Shown here: in pieces, positions 291 through 57,136 of the stretch
How positions within the stretch are numbered: position 1 is the first letter of the stretch
How the letters are laid out: each line of letters begins with the position of its first letter
NCBI RefSeq assembly: GCF_052425735.1
Contig: NC_135767.1
Coordinates: forward strand, 14,818,001 to 14,882,000
From: Oculina patagonica
Taxonomy: Eukaryota
Reading direction: 5' to 3'
Length of the DNA: 64,000 nt
Made by a program: the position numbers and the translations under genes
Notes under the pieces: generated by a model
Seen by the model: only the letters and a program-made list of their open reading frames with translations
Databases searched by the model: none
Told to the model about the DNA's origin: nothing

Positions 291-3200
291 CGCGTACATC
301 GACTCCCTTATCCCGCCCAGCCGATCTTCCGGTCTTTTTGCGTAGGCTCAATGGATTCATCCGAAAGTATTAAAAAAAAGACATATAAAATAGCTGCATT
401 CGCTACAGAACATCGAGCAACGATAAAATTAAATACTCCAGCAACGACTACAGGATTTTTATCCCCATTTTTATTATTTTATTCAAAAGCTAAAAATTAG
501 AAATTTTAACAGCGAGCAACATGAAACTAAAACAGAAATACAAAAACATTGAAAATACCTTGTATATTAGAAGAAAAAAATAATTCCGTCATTTTATCCA
601 ACACCAATTTTAACTAGAAACTTTCTCCCAAAAATCACTCATTTCACAATTCCCTGTTTAAAAAGGCAAAAAAAGCTAACACAGTCCTCACTACAGGTCA
701 ACAGACTACTGTTGTTGTTGTTTGTTTGTTTGTTTGTTTTTTCAGAATTTGATCGCTTAGTGACTTGCTCAAATTCACCAAAACTTATCCTCGGCATACG
801 TAAAAGTTGTCGTTTTACGAGAGGATGGAGGAAAACTGCTTTTAGTGGTGTACAACTAAAATCCCCTCTTTAAAAACGTGTTTTAACCCTATCATCAAAG
901 CAAAGCAAATTAAAACGAAATCAAACTGTTCAAGTCTAAATCAACGTAATGTTCCTGATGTGGGATTCCTTGATCCGGTAACCTCCCCGCGGAACGTGTT
1001 AGATAACCATCAGCCTCACCACATGCCCGACGGTCTTCTTCGATGTTCGGCCAGTGATGGTCGCCAGCACTTCGTCACTGCTCCCTCGTGCAGCTGAGGA
1101 TGGTGCCTTGAAGGCGACGGAGAAGAAGCTTTTGCGGCCTTGACGAACAGTGATGGAGGTGCGGCGAAGATGGGCAACATATTTTAGGCGATCTTTGACT
1201 TTGATGTCAAAAATCTCGGTTGAGCCTGTGTTGTAGACCACAAAAATCACGAACCCACGGCCTCCAGCCGGTATTGTGTACTCGTTCCTGGCGTAAAGGA
1301 CCCTAATCAGGGCGTGGCTGGGATGGACTGTGTTATGCGAGTTGCGTTCAAAGGGGTACCCTTTCTTTGTTGTCCCTCTCAGCTTTAACTTAAATGGTAC
1401 TGAAGGAGGTGTGAATGAGGCTGAGAAATGTGCTCCACTTGTTCCATGAGGAGACACAGTAGTTGTGCCTAGGCGCCTCTTATCCATGCTCATCAAATCA
1501 AGGCTAAGCGACCTGCTGTTGATCTTATTTGCTCCAGCAACTGTTAAGATGACCACCGCTTTCTTACCTATTAAATTTTAAAAAATCTGGTAAGCAATGA
1601 AACTTTATTTTGCGAAATAAATTAGGTTTGAATTTAAATACTGGCTGCATGAACTTGTTTGTATCTTATTTGCCTTTTTTTTTTACCTTCGATATGTTAC
1701 ATGTACAGCCGTGTAAAAAACCTTTTTTAACTTTTCAGCTCGTTTAGTATATTACTATTCTTGTTTTTTTGTTTGTTTTATTGCCTTTTTTAAAGTTACT
1801 TTGTTTTTTGCTGTAAAACAAACTATTATTATCTTTTTTTTTCTAGCAAAGTAAAATGTTTTTTTTGTTGTTGTTGTTGCTATTGTTTTTTTTTATTGTT
1901 GTTATAAACAGTTAATGTCGTGCATTTTTTCTCTACTGAAGCATTTTTGCTTCTAATTAACGGTGAGACAATAAACTAAGTAACACTTACCTAGGAGAGG
2001 ATGTGAAATAGGTATTGGTTTCCTGCTTCTTCCACGGGTTGGAATCATCACAAAAAAGTACTCGAAGTCGATGTTTGTTTTGCTTGAGCCTTTGATCAAG
2101 TAGGAATGTTTGCCAGCTCCTGCACGTACATCGACTCCCTTATCCCGCCCAGTCCATCTTCTGGTCTTTTCGCGTAGGCTCAGTGGATTCATTCGAAAAA
2201 AAAAAAAAGACATATAATACAGCCGCATTCGCTACACAACATCGATCAACGGTATAATTAAATACTCAAGCAACGACTACAGGATTTTTATCCCCATTTT
2301 TATTATTTTATTCAAGAGCTAAAAATTAGAAATTTTAACAGCGAGCAACAAGAAACTAAAACAGAAATACAAAAACATTGAAAATACCTTGTATATTAGA
2401 ATAAAATCCGTCATTTTATCCAACACCAATTTTAACTAGAAACTTTCTCCCAAAAATCATTTATTTCACAATTCCCTGTTTAAAAGGCAAAAAGATAACA
2501 CAGTCCTCACTACAGTTCACCAGACTACTGTTGTTGTTTGTTTTGTTTTTTTTTTGTTTGTTTGTTTTTTTTTTGCAGAATTTGATCGCTTAGTGACTTG
2601 CTTAAAGTCACCAAAACTTATCCTCGGCATACGTAAAAGTTGTTTTTCGAGAGGATGGAGGAAATCTGCTTTTTGTGGTATATAACTAAAATCCCCTTTT
2701 TAAAAACGTGTTTTAACCCTATTTAACCCTATCACCAAAGCAAAGCAAATTAAAACGAAATCAAACTGTTCAAGTCTAAATCAATGTAATGTTCCTGATG
2801 TGGGATTCCTTGATCCGTTAACGTCCCCGTGGAACGTGTTAGACAACCATCAGCCTCACCACATGCCCGACGGTCTTCTTTGATGTTCGGCCAGTGATAG
2901 TCGCCAGCACTTCGTCACTGCTCCCTCGTGCAGCTGAGGATGGTGCCTTGAAGGTGACGGAGAAGTAGCTTTTGCGGCCTTGACGAACAGTGATGGAGGT
3001 GCGGCGAAGATGGGCAACATATTTCAGGCGATCTTTGACTTTGACGTCAAAAATCTCGGTTGAGCCTGTGTTGTAGACCACAAAAATCACGAACCCACGG
3101 CCTCCAGCCGGTATTGTGTACTCGTTCCTGGCGTAAAGGACCCTAATCAGGGCGTGGCTGGGATGGACTGTGTTATGCGAGTTGCGTTCAAAGGGGTACC

Positions 3201-3954
3201 CCTTCTTTGTTGTCCCTCTCAGCTTTAACTTAAATGGTACTGAAGGAGGTGTGAATGAGGCTGAGAAATGTGCTCCACTTGTTCCATGAGGAGACACAGT
3301 AGTTGTGCCTAGGCGCCTCTTATCCATGCTCATCAAATCAAGGCTAAGCGACCTGCTGTTGATCTTATTTGCTCCAGCAACTGTTAAGATGACCACCGCT
3401 TTCTTACCTATTAAATTTTAAAAAATCTGGTAAGCAATGAAACTTTATTTTGCGAAATAAATTAGGTTTGAATTTAAATACTGGCTGCATGAACTTGTTT
3501 GTATCTTATTTGCCTTTTTTTTTTTTACCTTCGATATGTTACATGTACAGCCGTGTAAAAAACCTTTTTTAACTTTTCAGCTCGTTTAGTATATTACTAT
3601 TCTTGTTTTTTTGTTTGTTTTATTGCCTTTTTTAAAGTTACTTTGTTTTTTGCTGTAAAACAAACTATTATTATCTTTTTTTTTTTCTAGCAAAGTAAAA
3701 TGTTTTTTTTTGTTGTTGTTGTTGCTATTGTTTTTTATTGTTGTTATAAACAGTTAATGTCGTGCATTTAAAGCATTTTTGCTTCTAATTAACGGTGAGA
3801 CAATAAACTAAGTAACACTTACCTAGGAGAGGATGTGAAATAGGTATTGGTTTCCTGCTTCTTCCACGGGTTGGAATCATCACAAAAAAGTACTCGAAGT
3901 CGATGTTTGTTTTGCTTGAGCCTTTGATCAAGTAGGAATGTTTGCCAGCTCCTG
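291..3954. repeat. ~1.83-kb tandem duplication (291-2122 / 2123-3954) of the gene A 3' end
   Basis: The junction at ~2122 fuses exon-4 sequence (gccagctcctg) to downstream flank (cacgtacatcgactccc, compare 291). The intron, last exon and 3' flank are repeated. Confidence 0.9.
999..1567 (-). CDS. Duplicated terminal exon of gene A (second copy, intact ORF and acceptor)
   Basis: Nearly identical to 2839-3407, with 4 aa differences (V/I, Y/F, T/A, V/I). The aatttaatag acceptor is retained. Confidence 0.6.
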
Positions 3955-5123
3955 ACACAATCAATTTCCAAGTTCCTGGCCTTGGGTGGTTGATCTCGTA
4001 AATAGCTGCTTTCGTCAGAGAAATCTTTCCCGAGGTAACACGAGCTCCTCTTGGATCTCTGAGGTTAATGCTTGGCCCAGTTCTCTCGGTTGAGACGGAG
4101 ATGATAATCTTTTCTGTGGAATCATCGACAGGGATGATGTATGTGTAGGAAGACCCTCGTGGACTCCGCCTCCTTTTTCCTGTTGAGCTATTAGAGTCCC
4201 CGTTGTCTAGGCAAGTAGTTCCTCCGAGTGTGACGCTAGTTAAACCTGAAAGTTTTCTCAGCTCATTGCTGTTGGGAAGTATAAGCATTTGGCCGCATGT
4301 TTCACTGGCCAGCTTCTCGAATGGTGCATACGAAGAATGCCAGCACCATCCTTCATTTATGAAGAAGTTTATAGTGATATCATTATCTTCAGCCTCCGCC
4401 AGCACTTGAAGAATATTATAGTCGGTTGCATCTTTTGCTTGTGCATCAGTGAAAACATAAAGCGGCGAACCACCATTTGGGCTTTTGGCCATGGCTTCAA
4501 GGATTCCCTTGAAAGTCAGCTCGGGACAATCTCCACCGGCATGTGCGTTTAGAGCTTTGATGGCGTTCTTGAACTGTGTCCCATTACCGTAGCTTTTGTA
4601 AGTAACTGGGCCGGTTCCTTCAAACATACAATTGAGAAATAGAAGAGATAGTGTTTATAATGCATATTTTAATATGTTCTTATCGATCAATCAATCAATC
4701 AATTAATCAATCAAGGCTACGTTAATCTTCAACCCTAACCAGGAGGAGGAGGAGTGGGGGGGGGGGGGGTGCCTTTGAACGCTTATCACTTTTTCTAGAT
4801 TCAACCAAACGCTGCCAAACTTTGCGAGTTTATCTAAAATTTATCTGGGAATAATTCGGTAGGATAGGTTGTTGTTTCTGCAACAACATTTTGACAGATC
4901 TGTTTTCCTTAAATTTGTAATTTTTGTGTTTCTAATAATAACTTTAATGCAATTATTTTTACCTTTCTAGTTTTTTTGCACTGTTTGTTTTGATTCTAAG
5001 TACTTTTCAGTTATTTTGGGCGTTTTTTGACGTCCCACGTGACGTATATCAAAAGATGAATATTGGGACATGCTATATATCCTCTAAATTACATTATGAT
5101 TGCTTAAATATTCTGGACGTTAC

Positions 5124-5155
<32 letters not shown>

Positions 5156-8100
5156 AGTCCCCCTCGGTCTGAGAAGACTAATAAAATCCCGGTCTGAATA
5201 GGGTTAAAGGTGGGAATATCAAGGTTAACAAGAGCGAGCGAGGGTAAACGACACGCCGCAATTCATTTCTTTGAATTGTGTTACATTTTATCTTGACCGA
5301 GAAGCATATAGTGTCGCTTGTATAGCAAGGGAGCAGCATGACGTTTAGTAAGATTGGAGTAAGAAACATTTGGTAAATGTTCTAAAGAAATAAAAGGTGT
5401 TATCATCATTATTTTACAAAATATGTACCTGGATCGTTGAAAGGTGATAGAATGAAATCTACTTTCACGTCTCTTTTATGATTGACAATCGATATTGCGA
5501 TGTCTTTAGCAGCTTGAATTGCACCACTCATACTTCCAGTGTCATCAATGGCAAACATTAAAGTGACTTCGCCATTGACACTCATGAAGGTGTCAAATGT
5601 AGAATTACCAAGCTCTTTTTTAATGGCATCCATAAACGTCTTCACGGCGCTGGTGGCACCTCGCCTTTTTCGGCCACTCTTCTTATCCAGTTGCATTACT
5701 GTGTATAAGCCATGCCCAAGAGATTTGCGTGCAAACAGATAGTTCCGTTTCTTGGTCGCTAATTTGATGTTCGCTTTTATCTTAGCCAGTCGACGGGCAC
5801 TATGACTGTATCGAGATCCGGCGGCCTGTGCCTCGTACACTGCTCTTTCAATTTGATCAAGTGCCTCTAGGAACTTGTTCGATGGCGAAGTCCGTTTTGG
5901 CGGCGGAGGTGGGGGTGGAGGTGGAGGTGGTTTCACGACTAAAAAAAGAAAAGATAATTAAGGGCCCTAAAAAAAATTATAATTGCGGAAAAAAGAAACA
6001 TCAGAACTTAATGAACATAAACATAGAGAGTAAAAACAAAAACAAAAACGTATGAATCATTATCATCGCAATTAATACATAATATACTTAAAGAGCAGTG
6101 TCACGGACAACTCATCTTGAAAACAATTGGAATTTGTTGTTGCTCACAATGCCTCGTTGAAACGACCCTTGTTTACTTTCGGGTTAAAATTACTCCGTTA
6201 GTGTTTTTATCTTAGAAAACTTCTGTTTTGAGGTCTTCTTCAATTTGAAAGTAATCAGAAAAATGCATCGAAATACAGTGACATACCTCCTTTAAAGAAA
6301 TACTCGATTTTGATTTGGTGAGGCTTTAAAATTCCGCGGTCTGGGCAGAAAAGTAAATACCCGGTACAAAGTTGTACGATATGTGACTTAATGACCTGCA
6401 AGTACTTCCAAAGATCATTAGAAGGACCACGACGATTGCTTGAACAGAAAACTTTTTAGTTTACTTATTTTTAAGTTTACTTATAAGTTTACTTATTTGG
6501 TGTAACATAACTTAAAAGTTATGTTACACGTATCTGTAAAGCGGGAGTGGTGAAATTCATTTCTTTTAGAAACTCTACAAATTATCTAGACAAAGAGTGG
6601 TCTATATTAACTGTGGTAACTGGACGACTCGTATATTTCAACTATTTTAATCGATCGCTGTCTTATCTCGTACAAATCGTATAAATTCATCTTATAAAAA
6701 TTATTAGTATACTTAAAAACATATATCTGACTTGATTTATAAAAAGGTGGCTATTCGGGATTTTAAGGATCCATTTACCTTTGGTTAGTTTACCCCAGTC
6801 TCCAACTCGTTGTGTCTACCGGACTTCAATACATTTGAATTCTAAGCGCGCGCGCTGATTCGGATAACAGAAGTGTTCTAGCTTTCTATTTTGCTGTCTA
6901 AAGAAAGTTTGCCGGAGGACATCATTAAGTCCCGTGAAGGTAAAAGTCTTACGATTTGCAAGTTATGCGTCGGCTGTTATCGTACCTCAAACCGAGCTTT
7001 AGGCGGGTAAACACAGATAACCGGTCTTTTCGTTTTGCCAGGTACAAATAATGTTGAGCTTGCTTTAGACAGCAAAGGTTTTTAGCCATATCAATTAGGA
7101 CTCGGAACTAGACTATAGGGCTGATTTGAAGTCTTACGATTTGCAAGTTATGCGTCGGCTGTTATCGTACCTCAAACCGAGCTTTAGGCGGGTAAACACA
7201 GATAACCGGTCTTTTCGTTTTGCCAGGTACAAATAATGTTGAGCTTGCTTTAGACAGCAAAGGTCTTTAGCCATATCAATTAGGACTCGGAACTAGACTA
7301 TAGGGCTGATTTGAAGGCGGTCGTAACGATATTTGGCTTGAACTTTACCGTGGCTAAAGACTTTGTTTTTTACTGTTGAAGTGTGGGGAGCGGGCGTTAC
7401 GCGCTCGACGACATTCAAAGACATCCGGGACATTGTCGGTTATTTCTAAAAGAAACATGTCGGAGTGGATAGCCAAGGAATCGCTTCAATTGCTGATGTG
7501 AGTACATAGTTTTCTTGTGTCCTCAATTTTAGGCGTTCTCCGCCTTACACTCATAGTTCTCTGTGATTCGCTAGTGGGAGGCAATGCGATCGTGTGCATT
7601 TCCGGCCGCGACAATGGAGTTGACAATTGAGATAACACATGCCCGCTTCCTCTCGATATTTCGCCTGATTTGCTTAAAGTTGAATCGAATGTCGATGTAG
7701 AATGCTTTAGTTCAGTTTATTTGAGACGTGCATGCTTTAAGAAAGCTACAGTTCAGCTCTCCGCCGAGTGTTGTCTTATGTCTATCTTGGTGTTAATTTT
7801 GACTCACATTTCAAGTTGTAAACACTCTTAATTAAATTGATAGAATTCTTGATTTAAACAAAATGCCGTATATGCAGACTTTTTGGTTCAAAACACATAA
7901 ACTAGAGTACGTTACGTTAAACTTGAGCTAAAATTAGCCCTCATTCAGCGTTCGTTACAGAAATATGCCTTGTGAACTATGGTGTCGTGTCAAAATTCGG
8001 GAGACACCTTTTATCAAATCAAGTCAGATATGAACAAAACAAAACAAAAGAGTTCGCAAAGAGAACGTTTACAGTGAATCTCTGCATTTCTCTCTGCATT

Positions 8101-11100
8101 ACCACGCGACTGACAGGCATTCAGGTGGTAAACCATACAAGAAAATAACAAAAAATAACAAACGTCAAGCAATCTACGCGATTCTCACACTTGCTTCATA
8201 CCTTCCTTGGAATACACCAGCTAGAATTATTTTTTGTTGGTAGTTATGCTGTCCATTACAGGTATTTTGTTTTCTTTTTTTAATGCCTAGATGACCATCA
8301 TTCTGGGTAACTACGACTACAACATCCCCCCAAGCCGTTTCATTTGTTATAATGCTTCTGACCTGTTAGTGATGCCTTTAGTTGTGAATTAACAAATGAC
8401 AGTAGAAAAGTGTCATACTTGAATTCAACCATTTCTGTGGTTCCTGTGGAACATTTTTTGATGAAGCTCATCCTATCGGATTTCATATTGGATTGGTTTC
8501 TTTGTGTACTCACAACGTGCTTATGAGTTCTTTGTCTAGCTGCAGAATACTCGTCAGCGTGTCTGCTAGGTCGCGTTAGACGCGAGTGTCTTTATTACGA
8601 GTCGAGTGGTTTTATGGCCTGATTACATGAGCCGGGCTGGCCCGGTTAGCCGGGCTGGCTCGGTTTGCCGAGATGACTTTCAGCCCGGTATTACATGAGC
8701 CCGGTTTGCCGAGATGACTTTCAGCCCGGTTTTAGCATGAATGATCAGAGCACGAATGATTTTAATCACCTTTTTCCGACAATTTGGTGGTTAAATGTTT
8801 TGCACTTATGCAGCTGGATGGGTAACTTTACCTGTACATCCTATTTAGAACGAGTAGCATTGATTTTTTCATCGGATATTGTGCTCGGAAAAGAAATTTA
8901 ACGCTGGCCCGCTTAGCCGGGCTGGCCCGGTGAACGCGATTACATGGAAAATTTTCAGCCCGGCTAGCCGAGATCCCGGCATCGCGATACCGGGATCTCG
9001 GCTAACCGGGCTGGCCCGGTTGTCATGTAATCGCGAAGTTGATTTTTGTTGCGTTTAACAGACGTGCCGAGATCTCGGCAAACCGAGCCAGCCCGGCTCA
9101 TGTAATCAGGCCCTTACTTTGAATTTTCCAGGTTCATAATTAAGCTCAAAATGGTTTCCTTGAATTTCATACCCCACTTTTCAGCACAGTAGAGGATTCT
9201 TGAAGGTATTGTTAAACAGTGCAGTTACATGTATCGTTTCCAAAAAGGTAGTTGATGCTGACCACGTTTGTCAGCGCAAAGAACTTGCAAAGCATCTTTC
9301 TCTATCGACTACACCTTCTGAAGAACTGTTCTCAATGGATGAATACAACAGTGAGATCACCACGGCTGTTGAGACCCTTGGTATGTCCCAATTATTCCGG
9401 CGGTGGATTCCCTCAAAGGCATCTTATGCCTTTGGATGCTAAAAGCAGTACTTTTGTTGTCTAAATTCAGGATCCGCTAGAAATTGGCGGCACTCAGGTA
9501 TCTCATGAAGCTAAGGGAAAACAGAGTTTTGTTGAAAGGTGGCGAAGTCGTTGTTCCTCGTTAAATGGCTGCGTACCATGAAATCAACTTGTTTGCGATC
9601 GTGCAATTCCACTTCTTCCTAATCCAATCCATTAAATGTGTTTCTATGGCTAAAACACTCAAAAACACGCTATTGGATTCTCCTTCAGGAATTACTTAAA
9701 CATTCCTCTTCTCTACGCCAGCAAACCATTATTCACTGTTCTTGCAAATAGTTAACAAGTAACCTTGGTTTATGACCTTTTGATAGTAAGCTAGTGGCTG
9801 TGATAGTCACATGATGAATTTTGTGTTTTTTCCCGTTGTTATTACGGGTTTGCCTGGCGTTTCTTTCTGGATTCGTATGTCATCACTGATAATAGTTCCT
9901 TGGTTAATTCTGACTTTTTTATGAATAAGTTGGGTACGTTGACATCCACGCTTGTCTGGTTATGCGCGTTTCTAGGATTCAATTATCTTCTTTGAGCCAC
10001 TAATGTTGAGCGCCATGTGTTATGTTGGTTCTCCTTTAGGCGACTTCCCAAACATTTTCCCTACTACACTCTGTACGAACCACGTTTTAAATACTATGTC
10101 ACGGATTTTATCAGATTTTTGAACAGTCAAAATTTATGTTTGTGTCGCATGAAAACTATTAATAATAGTCCATTTTTATTTTAAACAGTTCTCACAAGTA
10201 ATTAAAAAGTTGTTCTCTCTAAGGTGGTTGTATTGGCTTTGTTTAAGTGCTAAAACATGTTTTATCTTAATTATCGGTTTTAATTTTTCCCTTGCTTCAG
10301 ATTTTTCTGTACACAAGCAGGCTTCAACTGGCTGGCGTCAAGACAGGTTGGATTCCCATCTCCCATCCCTCTCAGAATTCTGCATTTCAGGATCTATGTG
10401 GTGTAACTTGATTCTTACAACTGCTCTCCTCGTCATTTTGCAAGGTGTAATTCCTGCAGCTGGACTGTACTGCGTTTTGTCTCTCAAGACGATGTTATTT
10501 TGTCTTTCAAATGTTCATTTCTCGCTGTCTTGTTCAATGTTTGTATTGATCTCTCCAGTTCGCCGTTCTCCTTTGGGTGCATGGGGTATCAGATTGTGTT
10601 GTTAAAATCCCTCTTGTACTACCAAGTCATTAAATTCTTTAGTACTGAAAGGTGCTCCATTGTTGCTCTTTGCTCTTATACGAGTTCCATAAGTAGCAAA
10701 AATGTGAATCAGTAGCCTCTTTTTTCCGGCTTGGAAGCTTTTTGTTGGTACTGACTCAACCACTAGATATCCGGTTTTCTTGTCGATCACAACCAGGTTT
10801 TTCGGGACCGTCCGGGTATGGTCTGCCGTGGTCTATGGAGACCGTGTTTCTTGGTCGACTTTGGGTATTAAAATTTGTTACCTTCAAAGGTCCATCTCCT
10901 TTCTTCGTTTAAGCTACCTGGCATTCAAAGCACCGTTCAATAGCTGGTCGTGCTGTTCATCAGGGCAAAAGAGTAGTTCTCTTTTAATAGTTGTTTTGCC
11001 TTGATTTGCATACGATTCCTAGTCTGTGTCCTATATTGACCACTTTTCTCTGCTGGTAGTACTACGCGCTGTTTTTTTTTTCGAAGATTAGTTCCTGACT

Positions 11101-14100
11101 ACAATTAACTGGATAGCTCTTCTTTGATATGTAGGTATGGCTTTATGTCTTTGCCTCGTTTGTGTTTCTGCCAGTTTTCTTTCATAATCCTCTTTGCTAG
11201 TCGCTACATCACTTCATCTTTAAGGGTTTCGTCTCTCATTTATGCGACGCCCTCTGCATGCTATGGTTTTTTGGTCTATCTGATAACATCTTGGTCTTGT
11301 CATCTTCTGCCTCAGTAAGTGGGTGTCTGGAAAAGTAGTCCCGGGGTCCGCTTTGGCCTTTTTTGCCTCGTGCACTAATTCATAGCCTACGTCCTGCATT
11401 TCCGTGACCCATTTCTCTAGGCTGAATGGCACCTTCACCTTTTGCTTTGTTGAACAGGAGTAGCACAAGTAAAGGCTTGTGCAGTATAACTGAATCTAGC
11501 TTCTCCAAGTAGGTAGATTCTCAGTCTCTCCTTGGTCCATTTAATGGCTATGGTATCGTTTTCAGTCTGGCTGTATCTTTTCTCAGTCTCTATCGGTTTT
11601 AGGCTGATGAAGTGTACTGGTCGTTTGCCTCTCTCTCTGTTTCCTAAAGAAGGGTTGCTGATAAGCCTTCATTGAAGCTTGCTTCTGTGCTTCTGTGCGA
11701 AGAATTATTGGCTTCCTTGGGTCAAAGATTGTCATGTTCTACCCATTTGAGATGATGTCTTGCATTTTCCTGAATGCCTTCTAAACTGCATTTCCCCTTT
11801 TGAACGTCATTTCTTTTGCTATGGCTGCGTAATTGTTGATGAATCTGTCTAAGTAGCATGCCATTCCGGGAAAGTTACGGACGGCTTCCTTGTTCTCAGG
11901 TACTCCGCGCTCTTTGATAAAGCAATGAATTAAGTCCGTCTCTACAAAAGACGTCGATCTCTCCATTCCCAAAACGGCATTTCTCTCGGTTGATTGAGAT
12001 TCTGTGGTCTCTTGCTTACTGGAGTACTGTCTTAGCAAATCTCTGTGTTATTTGTCAACTTGTCCCGCAAAGAATATACCATTTCTCCGTTTCAGTCAGT
12101 GGTCTATGTCTCCGAAGATTGTAAATAATTATTGTTTATAAAGATATTAGGGGGGCTGGGGTTGGTAGTTTCTCCAAGATGTGCTAAATGTTGTCACTGC
12201 TCTGGTTGTCGGGTCCAATGTCAATTGATGGTATCTTTGTCTAAGATTCAATTTCGTTGAGATCTTGCAGTCGAGGAGAAGGTAGATAAAATCATTCACT
12301 CCTGATGGTTGAATGCATGGTGTTCGTTATATATGTTTGTCTGGGATCACCATATCCATGCTTGCTCTTATTGATCGTTTGAAACGCTAGCTCTTCTTTC
12401 TACACATTTGTGTAACATTGCTTCAGCAGTAGGAACTGAGATGAGCACCACATGAATCGTTCACCCGGCCTCCGGCACCTAGATTATCTCCTCTTCGACT
12501 CCCTATCCGAGCCACTCTTTTATCGGTTTCTGCAGATGGTATGTTACTGGTCGAGGTTTCTGAGCCACAGGAATTGCTGCAGATTCATCTCTAGCTTGAA
12601 GTTGAGTTTCAATATCTCCTATTCTGATGAGAACTGTGTTCTGGCCTGCACTTGGCCTTATCTTCTTCGCTTGGTGTAGTGTGTTGCGTTGTCTGCTGGA
12701 GGTATTCGCTGTCCCAGTAGCTGCTCCTTTCTTCCCAGCATCTTTGTGCCTTCTTGTCTCCCCCTTTACATCTTTTTAGGATTTCTTACTGCCCGTTTTG
12801 TCCTGCTCTGAAACACGGTGCGTAGTGGTTGTATTTGCCACACTTCAGGCTCTGCTTTCCATAGGCTGGGCAGCTCCAGCAGCCCAGGAGATAAAGTCCT
12901 GTTTTCCCACAGTAAAATCGGTTGTTCTTAGTACTTCTTTCTTTCTGTTTGTGGTTTTCCTTTCTTGTGGGCGCTTTTATTTTCTGGCTGGGAGTGTAGA
13001 ATTGTGTTTCTTCGTCCACTTTCTTTACCGCATTTATGGGCGACTCTCTGATTGTTGATTGATATCGTCCATATCGCTTGCTTCCTCGATAAACTGATCT
13101 AGGTTACACTTCCTCTTGATACTTTTTTTAAATATATCATTGTCCCTGATAGTTTGTATTACATGCCTGTAAACTATCTTTTTGTTCCAGGAGTGGTGCT
13201 GTGTAATCGACGACGCTTTCTCCCGGCTCTAGTCGTCGTTTCCTAGACGTGTATCTCGCATATTGTTTGTTGTTCTTCACAAGAAAATGGTTGTTCAATT
13301 TTCCTCTTCAGGTTTTAGTAATCATCTTCCCGGCCTTCCGCCGGAGCGTCCGGCAGGCTGCGTGCATGTTCTTTTGATCTCTGGTCAACCATTTTCACCT
13401 GTGCTTTATTGAGCAGGGTAATGAATAGAGACTTGTGGCCTGTAACGATTTTATATCAATGTGATCAGTCTCCCCTTGGCCCAGGCAGAAAAAAAATTGT
13501 GCTGCTGCCGCTTCGTAATTTTTGATTAAAATGTCTAGAAGCATGCAATTCCGGGAAACCTGCGACGTCTTTCTTGTTCTAAGGAACTCGGCACTCTTTG
13601 ATTGCTTTTAATTCATAAGTTAAGTCGGTGGAGGTTTCGTCCATTTTTACCAAAGTCCAAGGAACTCAACAGCTTGCATTTCTGCACAAACTGGCAATTA
13701 ACGTAGATCTTCAGCGCACTCACTATGTCTTTCTTATTGGTAATTCGAAATATGGCTTCCTCTTCGAAGTCCTTCAGCTGTTTCTCCCACGCTCGGCCAA
13801 CTTCAAGATGGTTGTCCGATTTTTTGAAAGGTCCTATCCGTTAAGTGTATTATCCACGGTGGTTACTCTAACTTCTGTAGCGGCGCTTACTCCTTCGTCA
13901 AAAATGTTGCTTTTTCTTCTGTCGAGCACTGATCGCCTCTACGAATTCTTCTCGGTGTTTATCTTTACTCGTTTTTAGTTTCGTTCTGCTTTGAATTTGC
14001 GAGTTTAATAAAAAGCGAACTAAACAACCTCGGCCTTTTGTATTGCGGCTAAAAATTGTTTCTCGCCCTACGCGTAGAAAACTACGACTTTGTAACGCCG

Positions 14101-14839
14101 GAATGGACTTTTCAATAAATAACGTAAATTGACCTTAGGCAACCTCTAAGAAAAGACTAAAATTACCACACAGTAAGAGGAAAAGACTTATTTACACACG
14201 GATGCAAAAGAGAATATAAAGAGCGGAGGCTATAGAGAGATGGTTCGCTAGCTAGTTTGAAATGTTAGAGTACGATGGAAAAGGATCGTTAGCGGCGAAT
14301 TTTTAAGTAAAGCATCCGCTAGGAGTCGAAAGTAGAAATTGTCTGTAACACACTTAATATATTCAGCACTACCATAGTGAAAACGCAAATAATAATTCAG
14401 TGATAATAACTTACCAGAGCGGCGGCGGCGGCGACCTGAAAAGAAATAAAATAACAAATTAATAAATACACTTTACATGCTTGCAAACTATTTGTTTTAA
14501 TTTTCGTTATTATAAGTGCTATTAGGTGTAGTCTTGTAGTTTGATGGCTCTTAGGGTCGATATATAGCGTTTTTCATTTATAAAAGAAAGGGGGAAGAAG
14601 GACGCAAAGGGTTAAAACTCACCAGACCAACCAGACCAACCCCATCCTCCGCCTCCGCCTCCGCCTGGTGCAACCCCAGGTCGCAAAGGTGGTGAAGTAG
14701 TTGGTTTTGGCGAACTAGCACCGGATGAAAATGACATTAACGCGTTTCTTGTATCATCTAACGGAGAAGTGTAGAGGTTTTGGGTAAACACCAGATTGGT
14801 CAGAGCTGTCACAAGTGCAAGGCAAAAAATTGCCTTCAT
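2839..14839 (-). CDS. VWA7-like secreted protein, gene A (5 exons, ~703 aa)
   Basis: Exons 14839-14623, 14435-14415, 5938-5429, 4617-3823 and 3407-2839. All introns are GT-AG and phase 1, and the exons sum to 2112 nt in frame. Signal peptide MKAIFCLALVTALTNLVFT. vWA MIDAS-type motifs FAIDDTGSM, GGDCPE and VFTDA as in VWA7/hemicentin, then beta-rich C-terminal domains. An upstream in-frame ATG at 14872 is also possible. Confidence 0.85.
4733..5203. mobile_element. piggyBac-like MITE in gene A intron 3
   Basis: Termini CCCTA...TAGGG flanked by tcaa/TTAA, with internal poly-G tracts. Confidence 0.5.
6092..6291. mobile_element. Kolobok-like MITE
   Basis: TTAA-agagcagtgtcac ... gtgacatacctcct-TTAA: imperfect TIR with TTAA TSD. 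Confidence 0.5.
6723..8031. mobile_element. Non-autonomous DNA transposon (~1.3 kb) with ~27-bp TIRs
   Basis: atatctgacttgatttataaaaaggtg (6723) versus caccttttatcaaatcaagtcagatat (ends 8031). Confidence 0.7.
6944..7316. repeat. 185-bp direct tandem duplication inside the TIR element
   Basis: Two copies starting aagtcttacgatttgc at 6944 and 7129; I found only one mismatch (ggtttttag / ggtctttag). Confidence 0.9.
8615..9113. mobile_element. PIF/Harbinger-type MITE
   Basis: TIR (t/g)ggcctgattacatgagccgggctgg ... ccagcccggctcatgtaatcaggccc, TTA on both sides, many internal gccggg sub-repeats. Confidence 0.8.
9850..13980 (-). mobile_element. Decayed Ty3/Gypsy LTR retrotransposon (gag, RT, RNase H, integrase remnants)
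   Basis: Minus-strand fragments: gag/zinc knuckle CPAYGKQSLKCGKYNHYAPC (~12810-12875); RT STKLNLRQRYHQLTLDPTTRAVTTFST (~12180-12260); RNase H EASFNEGLSA and RYSQTE (~11560-11690); integrase IFATYG..SNNGAPF (~10650-10710). Many stops and frameshifts. LTRs not identified, so boundaries are approximate. Confidence 0.8.
14415..14435 (-). CDS. 21-nt micro-exon of gene A encoding (G)RRRRRS
   Basis: Minus strand reads ttttcag|GTCGCCGCCGCCGCCGCTCTG|gtaagt: strong acceptor and donor, phase 1-1, frame preserving. Confidence 0.75.
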
Positions 14840-33601: not shown

Positions 33602-33999
33602 AGGCCTGGTTGTCATATAATCGCCCCGATCGTTTCTATCGCCTCTGTCACCTGAAAAGGTTTCTTGCGTTCAGGGCGACAAATTATATATATGATCGCT
33701 AACGTCTGCGACAATTAGGACGATCACGATACTGGCTTGGAGTGCCCATGTTCTAACCTTCTAGCTTCTCTTTTCTTTTTTCGCCGTGAAACAACAATAA
33801 CTGAGAAGGAGGCCACGAGTTTTGCCCTTTCATTAAAGGCTGCTTGGACTAAAATGATTGTTTTTTCGTAGGTCTTCGCTCCTACAAGGCGATCGGGACG
33901 TTCATATGGTGAACCCCCGATCGCTTCCAATCGCTTCGATCGCCTACGATCGTCTCAGTTTTTGTAAACGATTGATGCGATCATATGAGAACCAGGCTT
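33602..33999. mobile_element. Harbinger-like MITE (copy 1)
   Basis: TIR aggcctggttgtcatataatcg ... cgatcatatgagaaccaggctt. Confidence 0.65.
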
Positions 34000-34314
34000 T
34001 AGTTTGTATAACGGCACTGCACCTTCGATCGACACGGCACGTCTTTTCTTTTCTTTTGCTTAACTAAGTTATACGCTCAGGGAATTAAAAATATATATTT
34101 ATATAATATACTTTAAACGTGGTCACAATTTGAGCGACTGCTTCAAAGAGCTTATAACATCATTCAATCAGCTTTTGTTTTGGCTATTATGTTGCATTAA
34201 TAACCAAAATAAAGCACATTCAATATGTTAGTATCAGTATTAAGTAATATATTAGTTTAGCACAAGACCCCACAAGCATTGTGCTTAAAACCCTTATTGT
34301 GTTTAAATAACGGA

Positions 34315-34350
<36 letters not shown>
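34315..34350. repeat. (GAT)12 microsatellite
   Basis: Direct reading. Confidence 0.9.
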
Positions 34351-38293: not shown

Positions 38294-38710
38294 AGCCTGG
38301 TTCTCATGGAATCGCCCCGATTGTTTCTATCGCCTCTGTCTTCTATCGCCTCTGTAAAAAAGTTTTCTTGCTTTTAGGACGATTATATGAGAGTATTACA
38401 CAGGTGATCGCTAACGTCTGCAACAATTGGGACGATCACGCTAATGGTTCTATCCTTTTAGCTTCTCTTTCCCTTTTTCGCCATGAAACAGCAATAACTG
38501 AGAAAAAAGGCGGCCAAGTTTTGCCCTTTCATTGAAGGCTACCATTGTGTTGGATCTAGGACAAAAATAATTGTTTTTCGTAGGTCTTTGCTCATACCAG
38601 GCGATCGGGACGTTCATAAGAGAGCCCCCAATCTCTTCCAATCGCTTCGATCGCCTACGATCGTCTCAGTTTTTGTAAACGATCGATGCGATCATATGAG
38701 AACCAGGCTT
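38294..38710. mobile_element. Harbinger-like MITE (copy 2, co-duplicated)
   Basis: agcctggttctcatg ... catatgagaaccaggctt at the homologous position. Confidence 0.65.
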
Positions 38711-40327
38711 TAGTTTCTACAACGGCACTACACCTTCGATCGGCACGTCACATCATTTCTTTTCTTTTGCTTAAACGCCACAGTTATACGCTGAGGGAAT
38801 TGATCAAATATCATTATATAATATACTTCAAACGTGGCCACAATTTAAGCGACTGCTTCAAAGACCTTATATATAACAACATTCAATCAGCTTTTGTTTT
38901 GGCTAGTATATTGCATTAATGACCAAAATAAAACAAATTTAATATGTTAAACGATTTTCCTAAATAATTATTCAGAGTAACTCACAAACTTTCGTCGTTT
39001 CCAGCTCAAAGAACTGAGTTACAGTTTCTTAAACGGACAAAATGACATTATAAAAATTTGTCTAACGTTTTAAACTTGGCCATAACTTTACAACATCAAT
39101 TATTCTGTTGCATCATTCACTCAGGTTTTGTTTTGGTTAGTATATTGAATTTGTAACCAAAATAAAACGAACTTATTAAACAAAACGAATATTCTAAATG
39201 ATTTTTGAGAAATATGTTTCCAGTTAGTATGCTATAATTTGTTTTGTTATTTCAAAGGATTCTGTGTTAATCAGAGACGACTTGAACATAAACACTTCCT
39301 CTTTCGCATGTCGATAGTCTACATAGTCTCGTTTGTTGTCGCATCCCGAAACTAAACGTGCACGTAATTTAATTCAATTAAGGGAGCTTGCCACGTCGGT
39401 ATTGACATCTTTCTATGTTTAATCATAAACTTACAAGTGATTCTACAACGGTTAACCCCCCCCCCCCCCCCTTTAAGAATACAGAGAAAGTTTAATGTAT
39501 TTATTCCATCGAATTGAAGAAGTAAAAGAGTTTGACTAGTCCAATCCAAGGACTCCAATTATTTGAATTTAAATTATAATTAAGGTAAATCAATTGAGAA
39601 CATATGCAATGCAAATGACATTTAATTGTTTATATAATATTCCTATCAGAAGCGAGTAGAAAATTTTTACTTCAAAATAGATTTGGATACACTCCTGGAA
39701 ATTCATGTTAAACGAACTGGGACGATGCCCCTCGTGTTTTGCAGCAATCAGACGACAAATTTTTGACTTATGAAAAGAAAAGCGATATTACAACCGATTA
39801 GCTACGTAGTTTAAATTGGAGAGGTAAGATTTTTTACCCTTTTGTTGCAATTTTATTTAAAAAAGGAAAACAAAAAAAATATAAATATGCCGTTCGGCCT
39901 GAAAAAAAAAGTTACCAAAAAATACGAAAACTGTGGGGTTAATACGTATCTAAAACTCCTTATAGTTTATTGCAGAAATTGTTTCGTCTGTAGTTGCGTT
40001 TAATTGCTTTCAAAGCAACTGATTACACATATTAAATGCAGTATATTTGCTTAAGACTGGGTTGATTTAGTTATATCGGGGTTCCGTCCATACATTTTTT
40101 TGTATTTTTTTTTTATATCTCCTGGTGTATGCTCAATGATACAATGCTCTACCGACCAGTTTACGCCAACGAGGATAGTCTCGATTTGAAATTAAACTTT
40201 GAAATGACAACTCATTTCTCCAATTCCCGTACGTGTTCAATTCCAAAAGAAAAAAAAATTGCGCGGCTAAATTAAACAACAAATAACTAATGAACCATAT
40301 TTCATAACACTGCTGAAGCTAAATCAG

Positions 40328-40480
40328 NNNNNNNNNNNNNNNNNNNNNNNNNNNNNNNNNNNNNNNNNNNNNNNNNNNNNNNNNNNNNNNNNNNNNNNNN
40401 NNNNNNNNNNNNNNNNNNNNNNNNNNNNNNNNNNNNNNNNNNNNNNNNNNNNNNNNNNNNNNNNNNNNNNNNNNNNNNNN
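40328..40480. other. Assembly gap
   Basis: Run of N. Confidence 1.
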
Positions 40481-41737
40481 AATGTCTGGCAGGCATTGGC
40501 CTCAAAAGCCAGTTAAGCGTTTAGAAAGCGAAAGGAGACTTCAGTTTAGTCTTCTGAAATGTCGTTGTTATTTGACTTTTCGAAAGATGAAGCTGGAAAT
40601 GGGATTCGGAGAACCTATAATCGATCAATTTAGTCGAGTGTAATAACCTAGTGTTATGAATTATTCTCCTTTTAGTGCTTTGTTGATTTGTTGATTTTAA
40701 TCAAAGCTCACCCTGAAAACAACAGTGAACCCACTTTTCTAACACACGCACAAACTTCTTGTAACCTGTAACTTGTAACTACGACTTCCTTGCTTAAAAA
40801 TAAAAGTTTCGCAAAGAGAAAGAGAAAAATGTGTATATTATACTTAAACGTAGCCATAACTTAAGTAACAGTCTTTATAAATTTATTGCATCATTGAACT
40901 GGGTTTTGTTTTGGTTAGTAATGTTATTTAGTTTATTACTAAAATAAAGCAAATTCAATATGGCAAGTAATTATTCTTAATTATATAATAACATTGAGAA
41001 AAATTACCTTGGTATGCCTTGACGTTGGCTGCTTTTTTCAGGACTGCGTGCATGGTAAATAAACGAATTAGACAGAAGAACTCCAGTTTATTATTGATAT
41101 TTTAGCAACTCGTGCTTTCATAATTATGTAAAGTCATTGCATCAGTAACTCTGGTTTTGTTTTGGTTAGTGAGTATATTGTATTTATAACGAAAACAAAA
41201 CAAATTACCTGAATTAAATTAAAATTTTCCTTATTTGAGAGAGCCGTAACAGAATGTTCCCAGTAGTTTGCTCTGATTTTGTTCCTAGTTTAAGAGAATG
41301 TGTGCTCTTCGATTAGGTAAGCACTTTCTCGTTCATATCTATATGTTCAGACTTTACACTTCTCAAACTGACGCATCGCAAAGCCAAATGAACGTGGCTT
41401 TTATCTAATTAAGGCAGCTTGTTGTGTCGGTTTATAATGTTGGATTATAAACATCACGTAAATCTTATATCTACGGAAATGGAGCTCATTTCTAGTTCCC
41501 ATCCGAGACGCAAGGAGACGACATCATTGGTAGCCATGTTTAAAGAGAATTAAAATAAATAATGAAAGATCAAAATAGATTTATAGAATAAACTTAGGTC
41601 CGTTTTCTGTGGATAATTTCATTTAATTTCAACAATACCGGAAGTTGGTAGCGGTGGGTTACACAATAACGCCGAACATGTTTAATTTTCGCGAAACCCT
41701 CGAATAACAGTGAGTTACACTTCCGTTAACCATATAC

Positions 41738-41745
41738 TATAAATA
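41738..41745 (+). promoter_or_regulatory. TATA box of VWA7-like gene B
   Basis: TATAAATA about 60-85 bp upstream of the candidate ATGs (41800/41824). Confidence 0.5.
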
Positions 41746-41823
41746 TATTAACAGAAGACACCAGAGAATATTGGAAGCGACGAAGGATAAAGTGTTCTAA
41801 TGTTTGAATACTTCTTTGTCAAA

Positions 41824-44800
41824 ATGTTTCTTTGTCTGGTCGCCGTTCTGTCCTTGAGTATGTCCGTCCTCGCGCAGGATCTGTTCACGTCTCCCTTGGA
41901 CGAAGTAAGGAACACGTTACTGACTTATTCTACTGGTTCCTCGACGGCGCCGACAGTAACACCAACGACATATAAGAAGCCGGCGTATAATTGGGGTTTG
42001 TAAAGCTTATTAATCTTAATGATCTTCCAGGTTCCTTAAATTAAACCTTTCTATTTCTTTAAAAAGCGCAATCGAAATAAACACGGCATTGCTTAAAAGG
42101 CGTACCATACATAACGCCATAGTCGGCAAGACAAGGAAAACAAGTTACAGCAATTTTAAGCTACATATTTATTCGAAGCCTACAACATCGATTAACTGGA
42201 TATTGAAGGTCGGCATTTGGAACCAATCAGTCGCTCAGCAGCATGGACCAATATTATCTAACTCAGTTCAAACTCATCCTTTTTTCGCATTGTATTGATG
42301 ATGATAAGTAAAAAATATATATATATGAAAAACTTGTGATTGATGGATCCTTAACACTACATTTCTCACCGACCAAATTGAAAATGTGTTGCACATGAGG
42401 CATTACTGTTTAAATTTGCTTTATAGGGCGCTTATCCTCTGCCAAACTTAACAGTCAGTGACGAATCATTTGTTTCTGATTATTTTATAAGTAATTTTTT
42501 CAGGAAATGCTGTTATGCCCGCTTCGGTTGACATATCAGTTTCGTCCTGCGGCTCAAGCCAAATCTCGGCAAACCCTACGACACCCCCAAAGCCAAAGCC
42601 TACAAAGCCTTCCAATAAATTCCTCGGAGCTGTCGATGAAATTGAGAAAGCCCTCTACGAAGCCCAGGCTGCTGGAAATCGCTACAGCCATACGGACGCC
42701 AAATTGCAGAGAATCAAGAAAAGCATTAAACTCGCTGCTCAAGAGCGAAGCTATCAGTTTTTTCGTCAATCCCTTGGCCACGGTCTGTTCACTGCAATGG
42801 TACTAGACAAAAAGGCAGGTCGTAAAAAGCGAACACCAACCAACCAAGTGAAGAAGTTTATGGATTCCATCAAAACGGAATTAGGCGATTCAGTATTCGA
42901 TACTTTCATGGGTGTTCATGGGGATGTCACACTGATGTTCGCTATCGATGATACTGGAAGCATGAGTGGCGAAATTCAAGCAGCTAAGGACATCGCAACC
43001 TCAATTGTAAATCATCAAAGAAATGGGGCAGTCGACTTCATCCTGTCTCCCTTCAATGATCCAGGTAGCATAAAATATCGTACCGTATTGTTTCCCTCTT
43101 CCCACCTTTCCCTTACTTTCCTCTTTTCCCTTCGGCTGTCCCCTTCCCACTTTCCCATACCCATTCCCTTTCCTTCTATGCACTTTCCTCCCTCTCTCCC
43201 GCACCCCTTTCCTCCCTGCACGTCCTTCCCCTATTCCCCCTTTTCCCTTCCAATGTCACCTTTCCCCTTCCCTATCTGCACTCCCTTTTCCCTCCCCCGC
43301 TCTTCCTCTCTTGTCCCCCTTTTCCCTTTTACTCTCCCCTTCCACCTTCCCTCTCTGAACCTTCTTTGTCCTCTCGTGTTCTTTCCCTCTTCCCTTCTTC
43401 CCCTTTTCCTCTCTTTTCTTTTTCCCAGTTCATACTTCCCAATTTTTCTTACGTTTTTTTTTTTTTACCTTTCCCCCCTCCTTTTCTTTAAATCGCCCCC
43501 TTTCTCCTTGCTTTCTTCCTAAATTCCCCATCTCTCTTTCGTCCTTACATTGTCTCCCTATTTTCAGTTTTCTCACTACCACTTCCCCATTCACTTTATT
43601 ATATATATCCGTCTATCAGCCTTTCGCCTTCCTGCCTCATTTCCCTTCATGCCCTCTTTCCAACATTTCTTGTTTCTCATTTCAGTTTCTCTGTATTCCT
43701 TCTACCTTTCCCTTCTCCTACTTTTATTCCTCCACTTTTCCCCCCTCCACCTTCCTTTATCCGTCCCCGCCCTTCCCCTTCCCTCTTTTTTCTTCTCTCT
43801 TTTTTACCTTTTTCTGTTATTGTGTTTGCCAGATCTTTACCCCTCTCTCCTCTTCCCTGACCATCCCCTATATCTTGTCTCCTTTTTCTTCCCTATTTTT
43901 CATCCCACCTTCCCCTTTCCTCTTCCCGTTCCCGATTTTTCCTTCTCACAATCCCTTCTTCTTTTATTTTCTATTCGCTTCATTTCCCACGCTTTCCCTC
44001 TTACCTTCTTCCACACTCCCCAATACTTTTCCCCTTCCCTCTGTCACCTTTCTTATTATTCCTTCTCTCCAGCATCCCCATATCTTCATCTCATCTTTTC
44101 CTTTTTCATATTTACCATCTCCCCCCTATTTTGCTCGATGTCCTTCTTCTTTAATTTTTCTATATACTTTTTCCAACATTCCATTTGACCTCCTCTTTCC
44201 CTGATCCCCTTTTCCTTCTCCCCTTCCAATTATTTCTTGCTATCTACCTCTCCATTTTACGTCCTTTTTATTTCGGAATCAACGCTTTCCTTTCTGCCTT
44301 TTTCTCGTTTTAACTGCTGCTGTTTTATTGTCCAAACAGGTACAGGGCCAGTGGTTTATAGGGATCCTAGTCAGGGTGGCCAGTTCGTCAGAGACATCAA
44401 TGCTCTAAGAGCACATGCTGGAGGCGACTGTCCAGAGTTAACTTTTACAGGGATCCTAGATGCCATGAATTTTGGTCCTCTGCCAGGTTCACCGCTCTAT
44501 GTCTTCACTGATGCTTCAGCAAAAGATGCTTCTAACGAAAACTTCATGGATGCTGTTTCATTTGCCCGTGCAATGGGGCTGACAATAAACTTCTTCACTA
44601 CGGGAAACTTGTGTGGAAACCCATCTTTCAAGTCCTTTGAAGATCTTGCTAGAGAAACCTGCGGTCAAATGCTACGTCTTCCATCCAGCGATGACCTGAA
44701 GAAACTCTCAACTATAACTGGGATCTCGCTAACCGGCACAACGTGCCTTTGCAGTGGAGGAGATAACAGTGCAAGTGGCAAAAAGAAGAGGAGTGCTACC

Positions 44801-46035
44801 AAAGAGTATGAAATCCCTCTTGACGATTCAATCGAAAAGGTTATTGTCACAGTTACTACGCAGAACACAGGTCCGAACATCATCTTAAAGGATCCCTCAG
44901 GGAACACTTTTTCCTCGGGAAAGGTTCCTTTTCCTCAGGGGGCGTTGTACGAGATCAATAACCCTATGCCTGGGTCGTGGAAATTGGTTATCTCCGGAGC
45001 AGGAAAGCACACATACCTGGTTAAAGGATCCAGCAAGACAAACGTTGACTTTGACTTTTTCTTCGTCATGATTCCAAGCTACGGAACAAATAAAAAGCCG
45101 ATACCTATTTCCCAGCCGCTGCTTGGTAAGTACTGAAACTACCATTTCGTTTCCCTACGTTCCTAACGATGCCCCTTCTCCTGCAAAATAAGCAATCTCA
45201 CATATTTTTCTGCCCCTTTTAGAAAGAAAACGTTAACGAAAAGTCTGTCACTATTTCATCAGCTTCAGAATTCCACTCACAATAGGAGGCAAACACCTAT
45301 ACATCTCAGGATATACACACCACTACTTTTTCCGTTCTTGTCTTGTCAGAAACTCTCGCTACCGTTAGCACTAATTTCATTCCTTTTTTTTTAGAAGTGA
45401 CAAAAAAGTAAAATCCAATAGCTTACCATCGTTTTATTTCATTTTATTTATTTACATTTTTCTAAGGTGAGACTGCACGGGTTATCTTGATAGTCACAGA
45501 AGCCGATAAACTCGATGCAATGTCTCTTGACGTTGACCTCCTGAGCAAAGATGGAAATTCCCTTGGTAAGGCCTCTGCTAAACCTGTTGGGACAAGTGGC
45601 GCCCATTTCTCGGCTTCTTTCACTCCACCTTTAGTGCCTTTCCGACTTGTACTTAAAGGAAAAACAAAGAAAGGAAACAAATTTGAGCGCAGTTCCCACA
45701 GTATCGTCACTCCAAGCAACGTTTTGATCCGAGTGTTGTACGCAAAAGAGGAATACACAGTTCCAGCGAAAGGAAATGGATACGTAATGTTTATTGTCTA
45801 CAACAATGGCCCAAGCGAAGTCTTTGATGTCAATGTCAAGGATACTGAGAAGTTCAAAGCAAGCCTCCTCCGCCCCACCATCACAGTTCGTAAGGGGCGA
45901 ACAAGTTTCTTCTCCGTCAGCTTTACAGCCAAAAGTCCAGCCACCCCTGGCGGTACCGATGCAGTGCTAGTTACTGTCACTGGAAAAACATCTAAAGTCA
46001 CTGCTGCTCATGTTGTGACTTTAATGGTCGCTTAA
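41824..46035 (+). CDS. VWA7-like secreted protein, gene B (4 exons, ~695 aa)
   Basis: Exons 41824-41995, 42504-43064, 44340-45125 and 45467-46035, phase-1 GT-AG introns, 2088 nt in frame. The last two introns are at the same positions as in gene A. Signal peptide MFLCLVAVLSLSMSVLA; motifs FAIDDTGSM, GGDCPE and VFTDA. Confidence 0.88.
43090..44310 (+). repeat. Low-complexity polypyrimidine tract filling intron 2 of gene B
   Basis: About 1.2 kb dominated by C/T on the plus strand, with no fixed period. Confidence 0.9.
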
Positions 46036-56964: not shown

Positions 56965-57136
56965 NNNNNNNNNNNNNNNNNNNNNNNNNNNNNNNNNNNN
57001 NNNNNNNNNNNNNNNNNNNNNNNNNNNNNNNNNNNNNNNNNNNNNNNNNNNNNNNNNNNNNNNNNNNNNNNNNNNNNNNNNNNNNNNNNNNNNNNNNNNN
57101 NNNNNNNNNNNNNNNNNNNNNNNNNNNNNNNNNNNN
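56965..57136. other. Assembly gap
   Basis: Run of N. Confidence 1.

Follow-up and report, generated by a model that had tools for sequence, protein, structure and literature searches.

Two conserved polybasic loops as candidate convertase sites in paired VWA7/hemicentin-type proteins of the coral Oculina patagonica

The stretch of DNA under study, referred to below as the window, comprises 64,000 nucleotides of contig NC_135767.1 of the scleractinian coral Oculina patagonica (assembly GCF_052425735.1, positions 14,818,001 to 14,882,000) and holds two neighbouring genes in divergent orientation, gene A (minus strand) and gene B (plus strand), which are paralogs at 56% identity. We have carried out an analysis of both genes and of their relatives, and conclude that A and B, predicted to be secreted, belong to a branch of the VWA7/hemicentin-type family that is found in cnidarians and in which the His-rich HET-C-like core of the N-domain has been lost. 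In these proteins two polybasic loops, denoted site 1 and site 2, lie on either side of a von Willebrand factor A (vWA) domain, and the reading that we favour, and consider fairly probable, is that furin-type maturation takes place at the two loops with the resulting chains staying assembled. An initial annotation of the window had gone further, proposing that each gene encodes a convertase-processed polyprotein releasing several, possibly amidated, products; as detailed below, the convertase sites stand up to comparison, and the peptide-like part of the proposal does not.

Domain organization and family assignment

The two proteins have the same domain order, with a putative signal peptide, a short conserved N-terminal helix, a disordered basic and proline-rich linker, a helical N-domain, the vWA domain, a galactose-binding-like domain, a beta-sandwich and a C-terminal Ig_VWA7 domain. 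Using Pfam we identify VWA_4 (PF25106) in both genes, split over two exons in each (36–67 bits per piece, cut-off 27), and GBD_Hemicentin (PF23560) directly after it, with 39.2 bits in gene B and 42.1 bits in gene A (cut-off 27). The match to Ig_VWA7 (PF23619) is barely above the cut-off of 27, amounting to 27.5 bits in gene B and 29.4 bits in gene A, and is backed by full-length profile alignment; gene B also gave a weak match to VWA7_4, and neither protein has a Pfam match to the HET-C-like N-domain (PF25107). The comparison in hhalign of a profile of 44 cnidarian relatives with one of 27 VWA7 proteins of fish, molluscs and bacteria that have the HET-C-like domain results in a probability of 100% and an E value of 9e-81 over 595 columns, which together with the three Pfam domains confirms the description of A and B as VWA7-derived. 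Within the N-domain only the flanking helices align, the His-rich core HTxQDFYSHSNW...GKCxHGG...GINKD being replaced in the cnidarian proteins by the site 1 loop, and thus A and B are best described as a divergent branch and not as VWA7 proper.

A motif of the metal ion-dependent adhesion site type, DxTGS with a downstream T-D, is invariant or nearly so in the 44 relatives (D194, T196, S198, T289 and D290 of P0172, the annotated gene B protein), and marks a putative metal site of the vWA domain. As judged by eye, the N-termini of A and B are hydrophobic, with small residues at −3 and −1, and those of the relatives are similar. In both proteins this signal-peptide-like segment is indeed followed by Gln, as had been reported (QNLYTSPLD at 14756–14782 on the minus strand and QDLFTSPLD at 41875–41901 on the plus strand). 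A maximum-likelihood tree places A and B within an 11-sequence scleractinian group whose sister is a pair of Actinia proteins, and hexacorals also form another large clade, to which the Nematostella protein that carries the name VWA7 belongs.

Conservation of the polybasic sites

Six of the seven peptides quoted in the initial annotation can be read straight from the six-frame translation, at the positions given here with the N-termini and with the exons. The seventh, WSG-RRRRR of gene A, is not found in the unspliced six-frame translation but is present once exon 1, which ends at 14623, is spliced to a micro-exon at 14435–14415. The flanking position of the other basic runs is confirmed by the domain limits, as some 40 residues separate site 1 from the start of VWA_4, and some 30 residues separate the end of VWA_4 from site 2, at which GBD_Hemicentin begins. 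Site 1 reads RKRR in gene A and RKKR in gene B, and site 2 reads KRRR and KKKR, respectively, with RKKR in most relatives.

We have aligned 51 sequences, namely A, B and named as well as unnamed, transcript-derived cnidarian proteins, and the counts for site 1 refer to 49 of them; the named taxa are stony corals (Oculina, Montipora, Acropora, Porites and Stylophora), anemones (Actinia, Actinostola, Nematostella and Exaiptasia), an octocoral (Xenia) and hydrozoans (Hydra and Hydractinia). Motifs of the form [KR]x[KR]R cluster at two alignment positions only, around residue 172 of gene A (36 sequences) and around residues 397–403 (27 and 26 sequences in adjacent bins). At site 1, some 40 residues before the first vWA strand, R-x-[KR]-R is found in 36/49 sequences, usually followed by Ser; the carriers are nearly all anthozoan and include the great majority of the anthozoan-type proteins, and within this alignment the site is absent from the hydrozoan members with TSP1 repeats. 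At site 2, in the linker that joins the vWA domain to the galactose-binding-like domain, a basic run that is dibasic or longer occurs in 50/51 sequences, the TSP1-bearing hydrozoans included, and its commonest form is RKKR followed by Ser or Ala. Indeed, the P1' residue is mostly Ser or Ala at both sites, and the family consensus reads RxKRS at site 1 and RKKRR at site 2. The numbers of [KR]x[KR]R motifs observed, four in A and two in B, compare with means of 0.9 and 0.26 in shuffled sequences, and no such motif exists in the two proteins besides those of sites 1 and 2 and of the micro-exon. Among the 27 HET-C-bearing VWA7 proteins neither site occurs (0/27), and most of them have no such motif anywhere. 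One VWA7-like fish protein with an intact HET-C core, P0153, has an RRRR-S insertion inside the vWA domain (residues ~428–445), at a position unlike those of the cnidarian sites, which may represent an independent polybasic loop.

The penta-Arg run of gene A recurs as GWSG-RRRRR-S in P0174 of Montipora foliosa and as GGG-RRRRR-Y in P0151 of Actinia, where it sits inside exon 2 and not on a micro-exon; in the alignment it is missing from gene B and from most relatives. The predicted gene A micro-exon keeps the reading frame whether it is included or skipped.

Location of the sites in the structural model

For gene B (P0172), AlphaFold2 modelling based on the family alignment resulted in a compact and confident structure, with a mean predicted local distance difference test value (pLDDT) of 85.4 and a predicted template modelling score (pTM) of 0.85. 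Site 1 corresponds to a loop between two helices (residues 150–158), in which pLDDT falls below 50 at residues 153–155, and site 2 to a loop between two beta strands (residues 375–386) with pLDDT of about 70; both polybasic sites are thus predicted to be exposed and flexible. The linker formed by residues 30–76 is disordered in the model, and the short helix that comes after the signal peptide (residues 11–21) is modelled at high confidence, pointing to its packing on the protein body. The search of solved structures by sequence gave nothing useful, and Foldseek against the PDB returned only generic vWA folds, among them those of integrin beta I-like domains and of pilus adhesins, and no solved relative of the whole architecture.

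We have also analysed by complex prediction whether the two parts flanking site 2 would associate, using residues 77–380 and residues 387–683. The score was 0.49 against 0.01 for the best control, with runs agreeing in at least 57% of the contacts and a partner pLDDT of at least 79, and was classed as weak support; the mark for such predictions was reached by 51 of 78 solved complexes and by 2 of 108 mismatches. Gene A has no cysteine C-terminal to site 2, and therefore any association of its fragments would be non-covalent. As regards the claim that each gene releases several products, the candidate cleavage sites are supported by the comparison, but the release of free modules is doubtful considering the compactness of the model and the predicted association of the two halves: the fragments may stay together rather than being freed as modules.

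Probable convertase maturation and alternative readings

In the Oculina genome, exons matching the P domain of proprotein convertases number at least 26. Considering the conservation of the motifs across cnidarian relatives, their location in modelled flexible loops and the presence of P-domain exons, the two loops are best interpreted as places of convertase cleavage, in agreement with what the initial annotation had inferred. In such a scheme, furin-type proprotein convertases would mature A and B in the secretory pathway by cutting site 1 behind R-K-[KR]-R and site 2 behind K-[KR]-[KR]-R, which is R-K-K-R in most relatives, and in gene A and some relatives an extra cut might be made at the penta-Arg of the N-terminal linker. 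The chains would probably stay non-covalently assembled, resulting in a processed multi-chain adhesion or recognition protein and not in a set of shed independent modules. Convertase processing as such is well supported by the comparison and by the model; that cleavage takes place, where it does and what becomes of the fragments is what we infer from them.

A number of observations weigh against this reading. At site 2 the P4 residue of A and B is Lys, which fits the general convertase motif and is weaker for furin itself. The complex prediction was of the weak-support class and concerns two parts of one chain. The gene A micro-exon is predicted from splice signals, and the signal peptides of A and B were recognized by eye from a hydrophobic core and the −3/−1 rule. 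Our literature searches for VWA7 together with furin or coral gave nothing relevant, and no protein-level evidence of cleavage was found there. Also, conserved basic patches can bind glycosaminoglycans or other polyanions. This last point leads to the strongest of the alternatives, which we nevertheless judge unlikely, namely that the polybasic loops are binding patches for sulfated glycans, mucus, acidic matrix proteins or microbial surfaces on a chain that is never cut. The motifs are indeed short, exposed and basic and belong to a secreted protein of the adhesion type, Lys and Arg abound in the N-terminal linkers of many relatives, and cleavage is read here from motifs and a model. However, what is conserved amid variable loops rich in Ser, Gly and Asn is a specific R-x-[KR]-R followed by a small P1' residue (Ser or Ala), and a pattern of this kind is the signature of a convertase site and not of general basic charge; moreover, the penta-Arg of the gene A micro-exon is the sole further motif of this kind in the two proteins. 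It is scarcely credible that the motifs are functionless, chance by-products of low-complexity linkers rich in basic residues. The N-terminal linker is certainly of low complexity and highly variable, and the penta-Arg of gene A, which lies in a stretch rich in Gly, Trp and Pro, has the restricted distribution described above; the micro-exon with its penta-Arg is the one case that chance might still explain. The idea is contradicted by conservation in the case of sites 1 and 2, since they are kept at the same alignment positions in hexacorals and in the octocoral, and site 2 also in hydrozoans, while nearby loop residues vary, and shuffling yields on average less than one motif per protein.

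An alternative that develops the initial annotation is a polyprotein that would be cut by convertases, trimmed by a carboxypeptidase, C-amidated at Gly and N-pyroglutamylated, and would thereby give rise to separate bioactive pieces. Speaking for it, A, B and their closest scleractinian relatives have Gly before both basic runs and Gln after the signal peptide, the segment Gln20–Gly72 of gene A is flanked as in a peptide precursor, and exons matching Cu2_monoox_C occur in the genome. However, in the alignment it is the basic runs that are conserved and not the preceding Gly, which is found in 14/49 sequences at site 1 and in 17/51 at site 2, nearly all of these from the scleractinian A/B subclade; in other clades the position is taken by N, S, A, P, E, H or other residues, and the loops are rich in Gly and Ser anyway. 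The N-terminal Gln is likewise confined to this subclade, the anemones, Xenia and the other coral clade having other first residues, and what all these clades have in common after the signal peptide is a motif [FL]-x-S-[LM]-D/Q-x-x-R-x-x-[LM]-M-x-[FY]-S. The N-terminal segment of gene B is not followed by a basic site, and in the model the N-terminal helix has the high confidence that suggests packing on the protein body. Nor are the predicted pieces peptide-like, as they would consist of a segment of about 53 residues and of folded domains of some 90–300 residues, with an overall range of about 50–300 residues, and the folded domains are predicted to stay associated. The Cu2_monoox_C matches, fifteen in number, are short and exon-level (best E value 2.6e-6), and do not separate PAM from other copper monooxygenases. 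A polyprotein of this kind is accordingly very unlikely, and the confinement of Gly and Gln to one scleractinian subclade means that amidation and pyroglutamate formation remain speculation, conceivable for that subclade only and with nothing specific in their favour. Only slightly less improbable is a more elaborate variant of convertase maturation, in which cnidarian VWA7, by losing the HET-C core and acquiring cleavage loops, would have become a zymogen-like recognition or adhesion factor switched on by proteolysis, which would expose the vWA metal site or free the docked N-terminal helix, and in which, within the scleractinian A/B subclade, the segment Gln20–Gly72 that precedes the penta-Arg of gene A might in addition be released as a pyroglutamyl, amidated signalling peptide.

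Gene models and genomic context

Reading frames and splice signals define gene A as a five-exon gene of 703 residues running on the minus strand from 14839 to 2839, and gene B as a four-exon gene of 695 residues on the plus strand (41824–46035). Three intron positions are common to both genes, all of them in phase 1, to which gene A adds its 21-nucleotide micro-exon. Exon 1 of gene A (14623..14839, minus strand) encodes the signal-peptide-like segment (MKAIFCLALVTALTNLVFT), Gln, the conserved N-terminal helix motif and a linker rich in Pro, Gly and Trp, and ends in a GTGAGT donor in phase 1. The predicted micro-exon (14415..14435, minus strand) encodes (G)RRRRRS between a TTTCAG acceptor and a GTAAGT donor, in phase 1 on both sides. 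Exon 3 (5429..5938, minus strand) contributes a poly-Pro stretch, the helical N-domain with site 1 (KSG-RKRR, 5661–5681) and the first part of the vWA domain including a DDTGSM motif; exon 4 (3823..4617, minus strand) comprises the remaining vWA domain, the linker with site 2 (STG-KRRR, 4166–4186) and the galactose-binding-like domain, and exon 5 (2839..3407, minus strand) the beta-sandwich, the Ig_VWA7 domain and the stop codon. No protein identical to gene A was present in the collections searched, the closest having 78% identity.

The long intron between the micro-exon and exon 3 (5939–14414, minus strand) extends over 8.5 kb and contains transposon-like open frames, with a zinc-knuckle-like peptide at about 12786–13019 and reverse transcriptase-like fragments; its AT skew is −0.30 over 10–14 kb. 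About 700 bp past the stop codon of gene A, at 1992–2126 on the minus strand, there is an open stretch of 45 residues that shares 96% identity with the last part of exon 4 of gene A (query residues 220–264) and that looks like a partial duplicate or a pseudo-exon fragment.

In gene B, exon 1 (41824..41995, plus strand) specifies the putative signal peptide (MFLCLVAVLSLSMSVLA), after which come Gln, the conserved helix motif and a Thr/Pro linker, and is overlapped by an RNA contig at 41762–41978; an additional in-frame ATG is found upstream of the start, at 41800. Exon 2 (42504..43064, plus strand) carries the helical N-domain with site 1 (KAG-RKKR, 42812–42832) and the start of the vWA domain, exon 3 (44340..45125, plus strand) the remaining vWA domain, the linker with site 2 (ASG-KKKR, 44771–44791) and the galactose-binding-like domain, and exon 4 (45467..46035, plus strand) the beta-sandwich, the Ig_VWA7 domain and the stop codon. 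Residues 13–695 are identical to P0172, a protein annotated in Oculina patagonica. Among the four sequencing runs compared, X1 was taken as RNA, its contigs covering gene B exons only, and the three others, which cover introns, as DNA-like. All three introns of gene B are confirmed by X1 contigs, with GT..AG joints at 41995/42504, 43064/44340 and 45125/45467 and an intron depth of zero.

The runs also evidence several differences from the window. At 42815 (plus strand) all four have T for G, which changes Ala to Ser and KAG-RKKR to KSG-RKKR, as in gene A, and leaves the basic run unaltered. At the start of exon 2 all runs have three 1-base deletions (42547, 42554 and 42577) that are in frame when taken together, and a second X1 contig joins 41996 to 42580 (plus strand) without GT..AG ends, across letters that the contig does not specify; these features probably reflect allelic or strain variation where exon 2 begins with low-complexity sequence, and not alternative splicing. 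Intron 2 of gene B (43065–44339, plus strand), of about 1.27 kb, is pyrimidine-rich and of low complexity, with a GC skew of −0.43 over 42001–44000, and in the three DNA-like runs it differs from the window by the replacement of about 99 bases near 43423–43523, the absence of about 127 bases near 43706–43834 and several small indels.

An intergenic assembly gap of 153 N (40328..40480) precedes the start codon of gene B by 1.3 kb. No coding exon of A or B touches it, so that continuity and frame across the gap are irrelevant to the present finding. The RNA contig starts at 41762, and an untranslated 5' exon beyond the gap is conceivable. A second gap, of 172 N at 56965–57136, is outside the region of interest. 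The genome of Oculina patagonica has about eight VWA7-like loci: further family members are found on the same contig at 14545095–14567057, some 250–270 kb before the window, a group that probably encodes P0191 and P0193, and more copies are on contigs C2, C11 and C6.

Significance and comparison with known systems

We know of no characterised function of VWA7 in any animal. In agreement, our literature searches turned up no VWA7 function, no paper linking VWA7 to furin or describing the sites, and nothing relevant for VWA7 in combination with cnidaria. The cnidarian branch offers a testable handle on this family, in the form of two deeply conserved and probably convertase-cut loops, one of them standing where the N-domain otherwise has its putative catalytic-like core. 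Cleavage, once confirmed, would reveal how the family matures and would provide sites to mutate in functional studies; it would not amount to a new kind of secreted peptide system. The interest of the finding is moderate, resulting mainly from the lack of a characterised VWA7 function and from the fact that the sites can be tested immediately. The antiviral response of Nematostella is reported to induce, among others, a gene with the name VWA7 (PMC13319465), which may correspond to the family member P0008. We have also considered whether A or B could be a component of the coral skeleton matrix, and rejected the idea: the 'hemicentin' of Oculina and Stylophora skeletal proteomes is a different protein, with TSP1, F5/8C and VWA (PF00092) domains, and no peptide of gene A or B is present in the skeletal proteome supplement.

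In cnidarian neuropeptide and hormone precursors, Gly followed by basic residues leads to amidation, N-terminal pyroglutamate is formed, and the products are short repeated peptides. A and B resemble them in having Gln behind the putative signal peptide and Gly ahead of the basic runs, but differ in that their products would be folded domains and that neither Gly nor Gln is conserved beyond one subclade. Another parallel is provided by convertase-matured secreted and adhesion proteins. Pro-von Willebrand factor, integrin alpha chains and Notch (S1), all of them large and either secreted or on the cell surface, are cut at R-x-K/R-R in an exposed loop, and the chains often stay associated once cut; A and B are likewise large and predicted to be secreted, and have a candidate loop site of the R-x-K/R-R type, known here from sequence and model, and they share with these proteins no sequence relationship beyond the vWA fold.

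Regarding the family itself, NCBI names the cnidarian relatives 'VWA7-like' or 'hemicentin-2-like'. The N-terminal module of hemicentin has the same VWA_4 (PF25106) and GBD_Hemicentin (PF23560) domains in the same order as A and B, which, unlike hemicentin, are devoid of Ig, EGF and fibulin-type repeats; conversely, the hemicentin-like matches P0085, P0128 and P0149 have no polybasic motif in the linker between vWA and GBD. Vertebrate and bacterial VWA7 proteins (PF25107, PF25106, PF23560, PF23610 and PF23619) have the same order as A and B from the N-domain flanks through Ig_VWA7. In contrast to them, the cnidarian branch lacks the His-rich HET-C-like core of about 100 residues, in whose place the site 1 loop is found, as well as the C-terminal extensions, and has the site 2 polybasic loop in addition, both loops being absent from all of the HET-C-bearing proteins compared (27/27). 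In this comparison A and B are a divergent cnidarian variant of a known family that carries a known kind of processing signal, for which the idea of an amidated polyprotein is unsupported.

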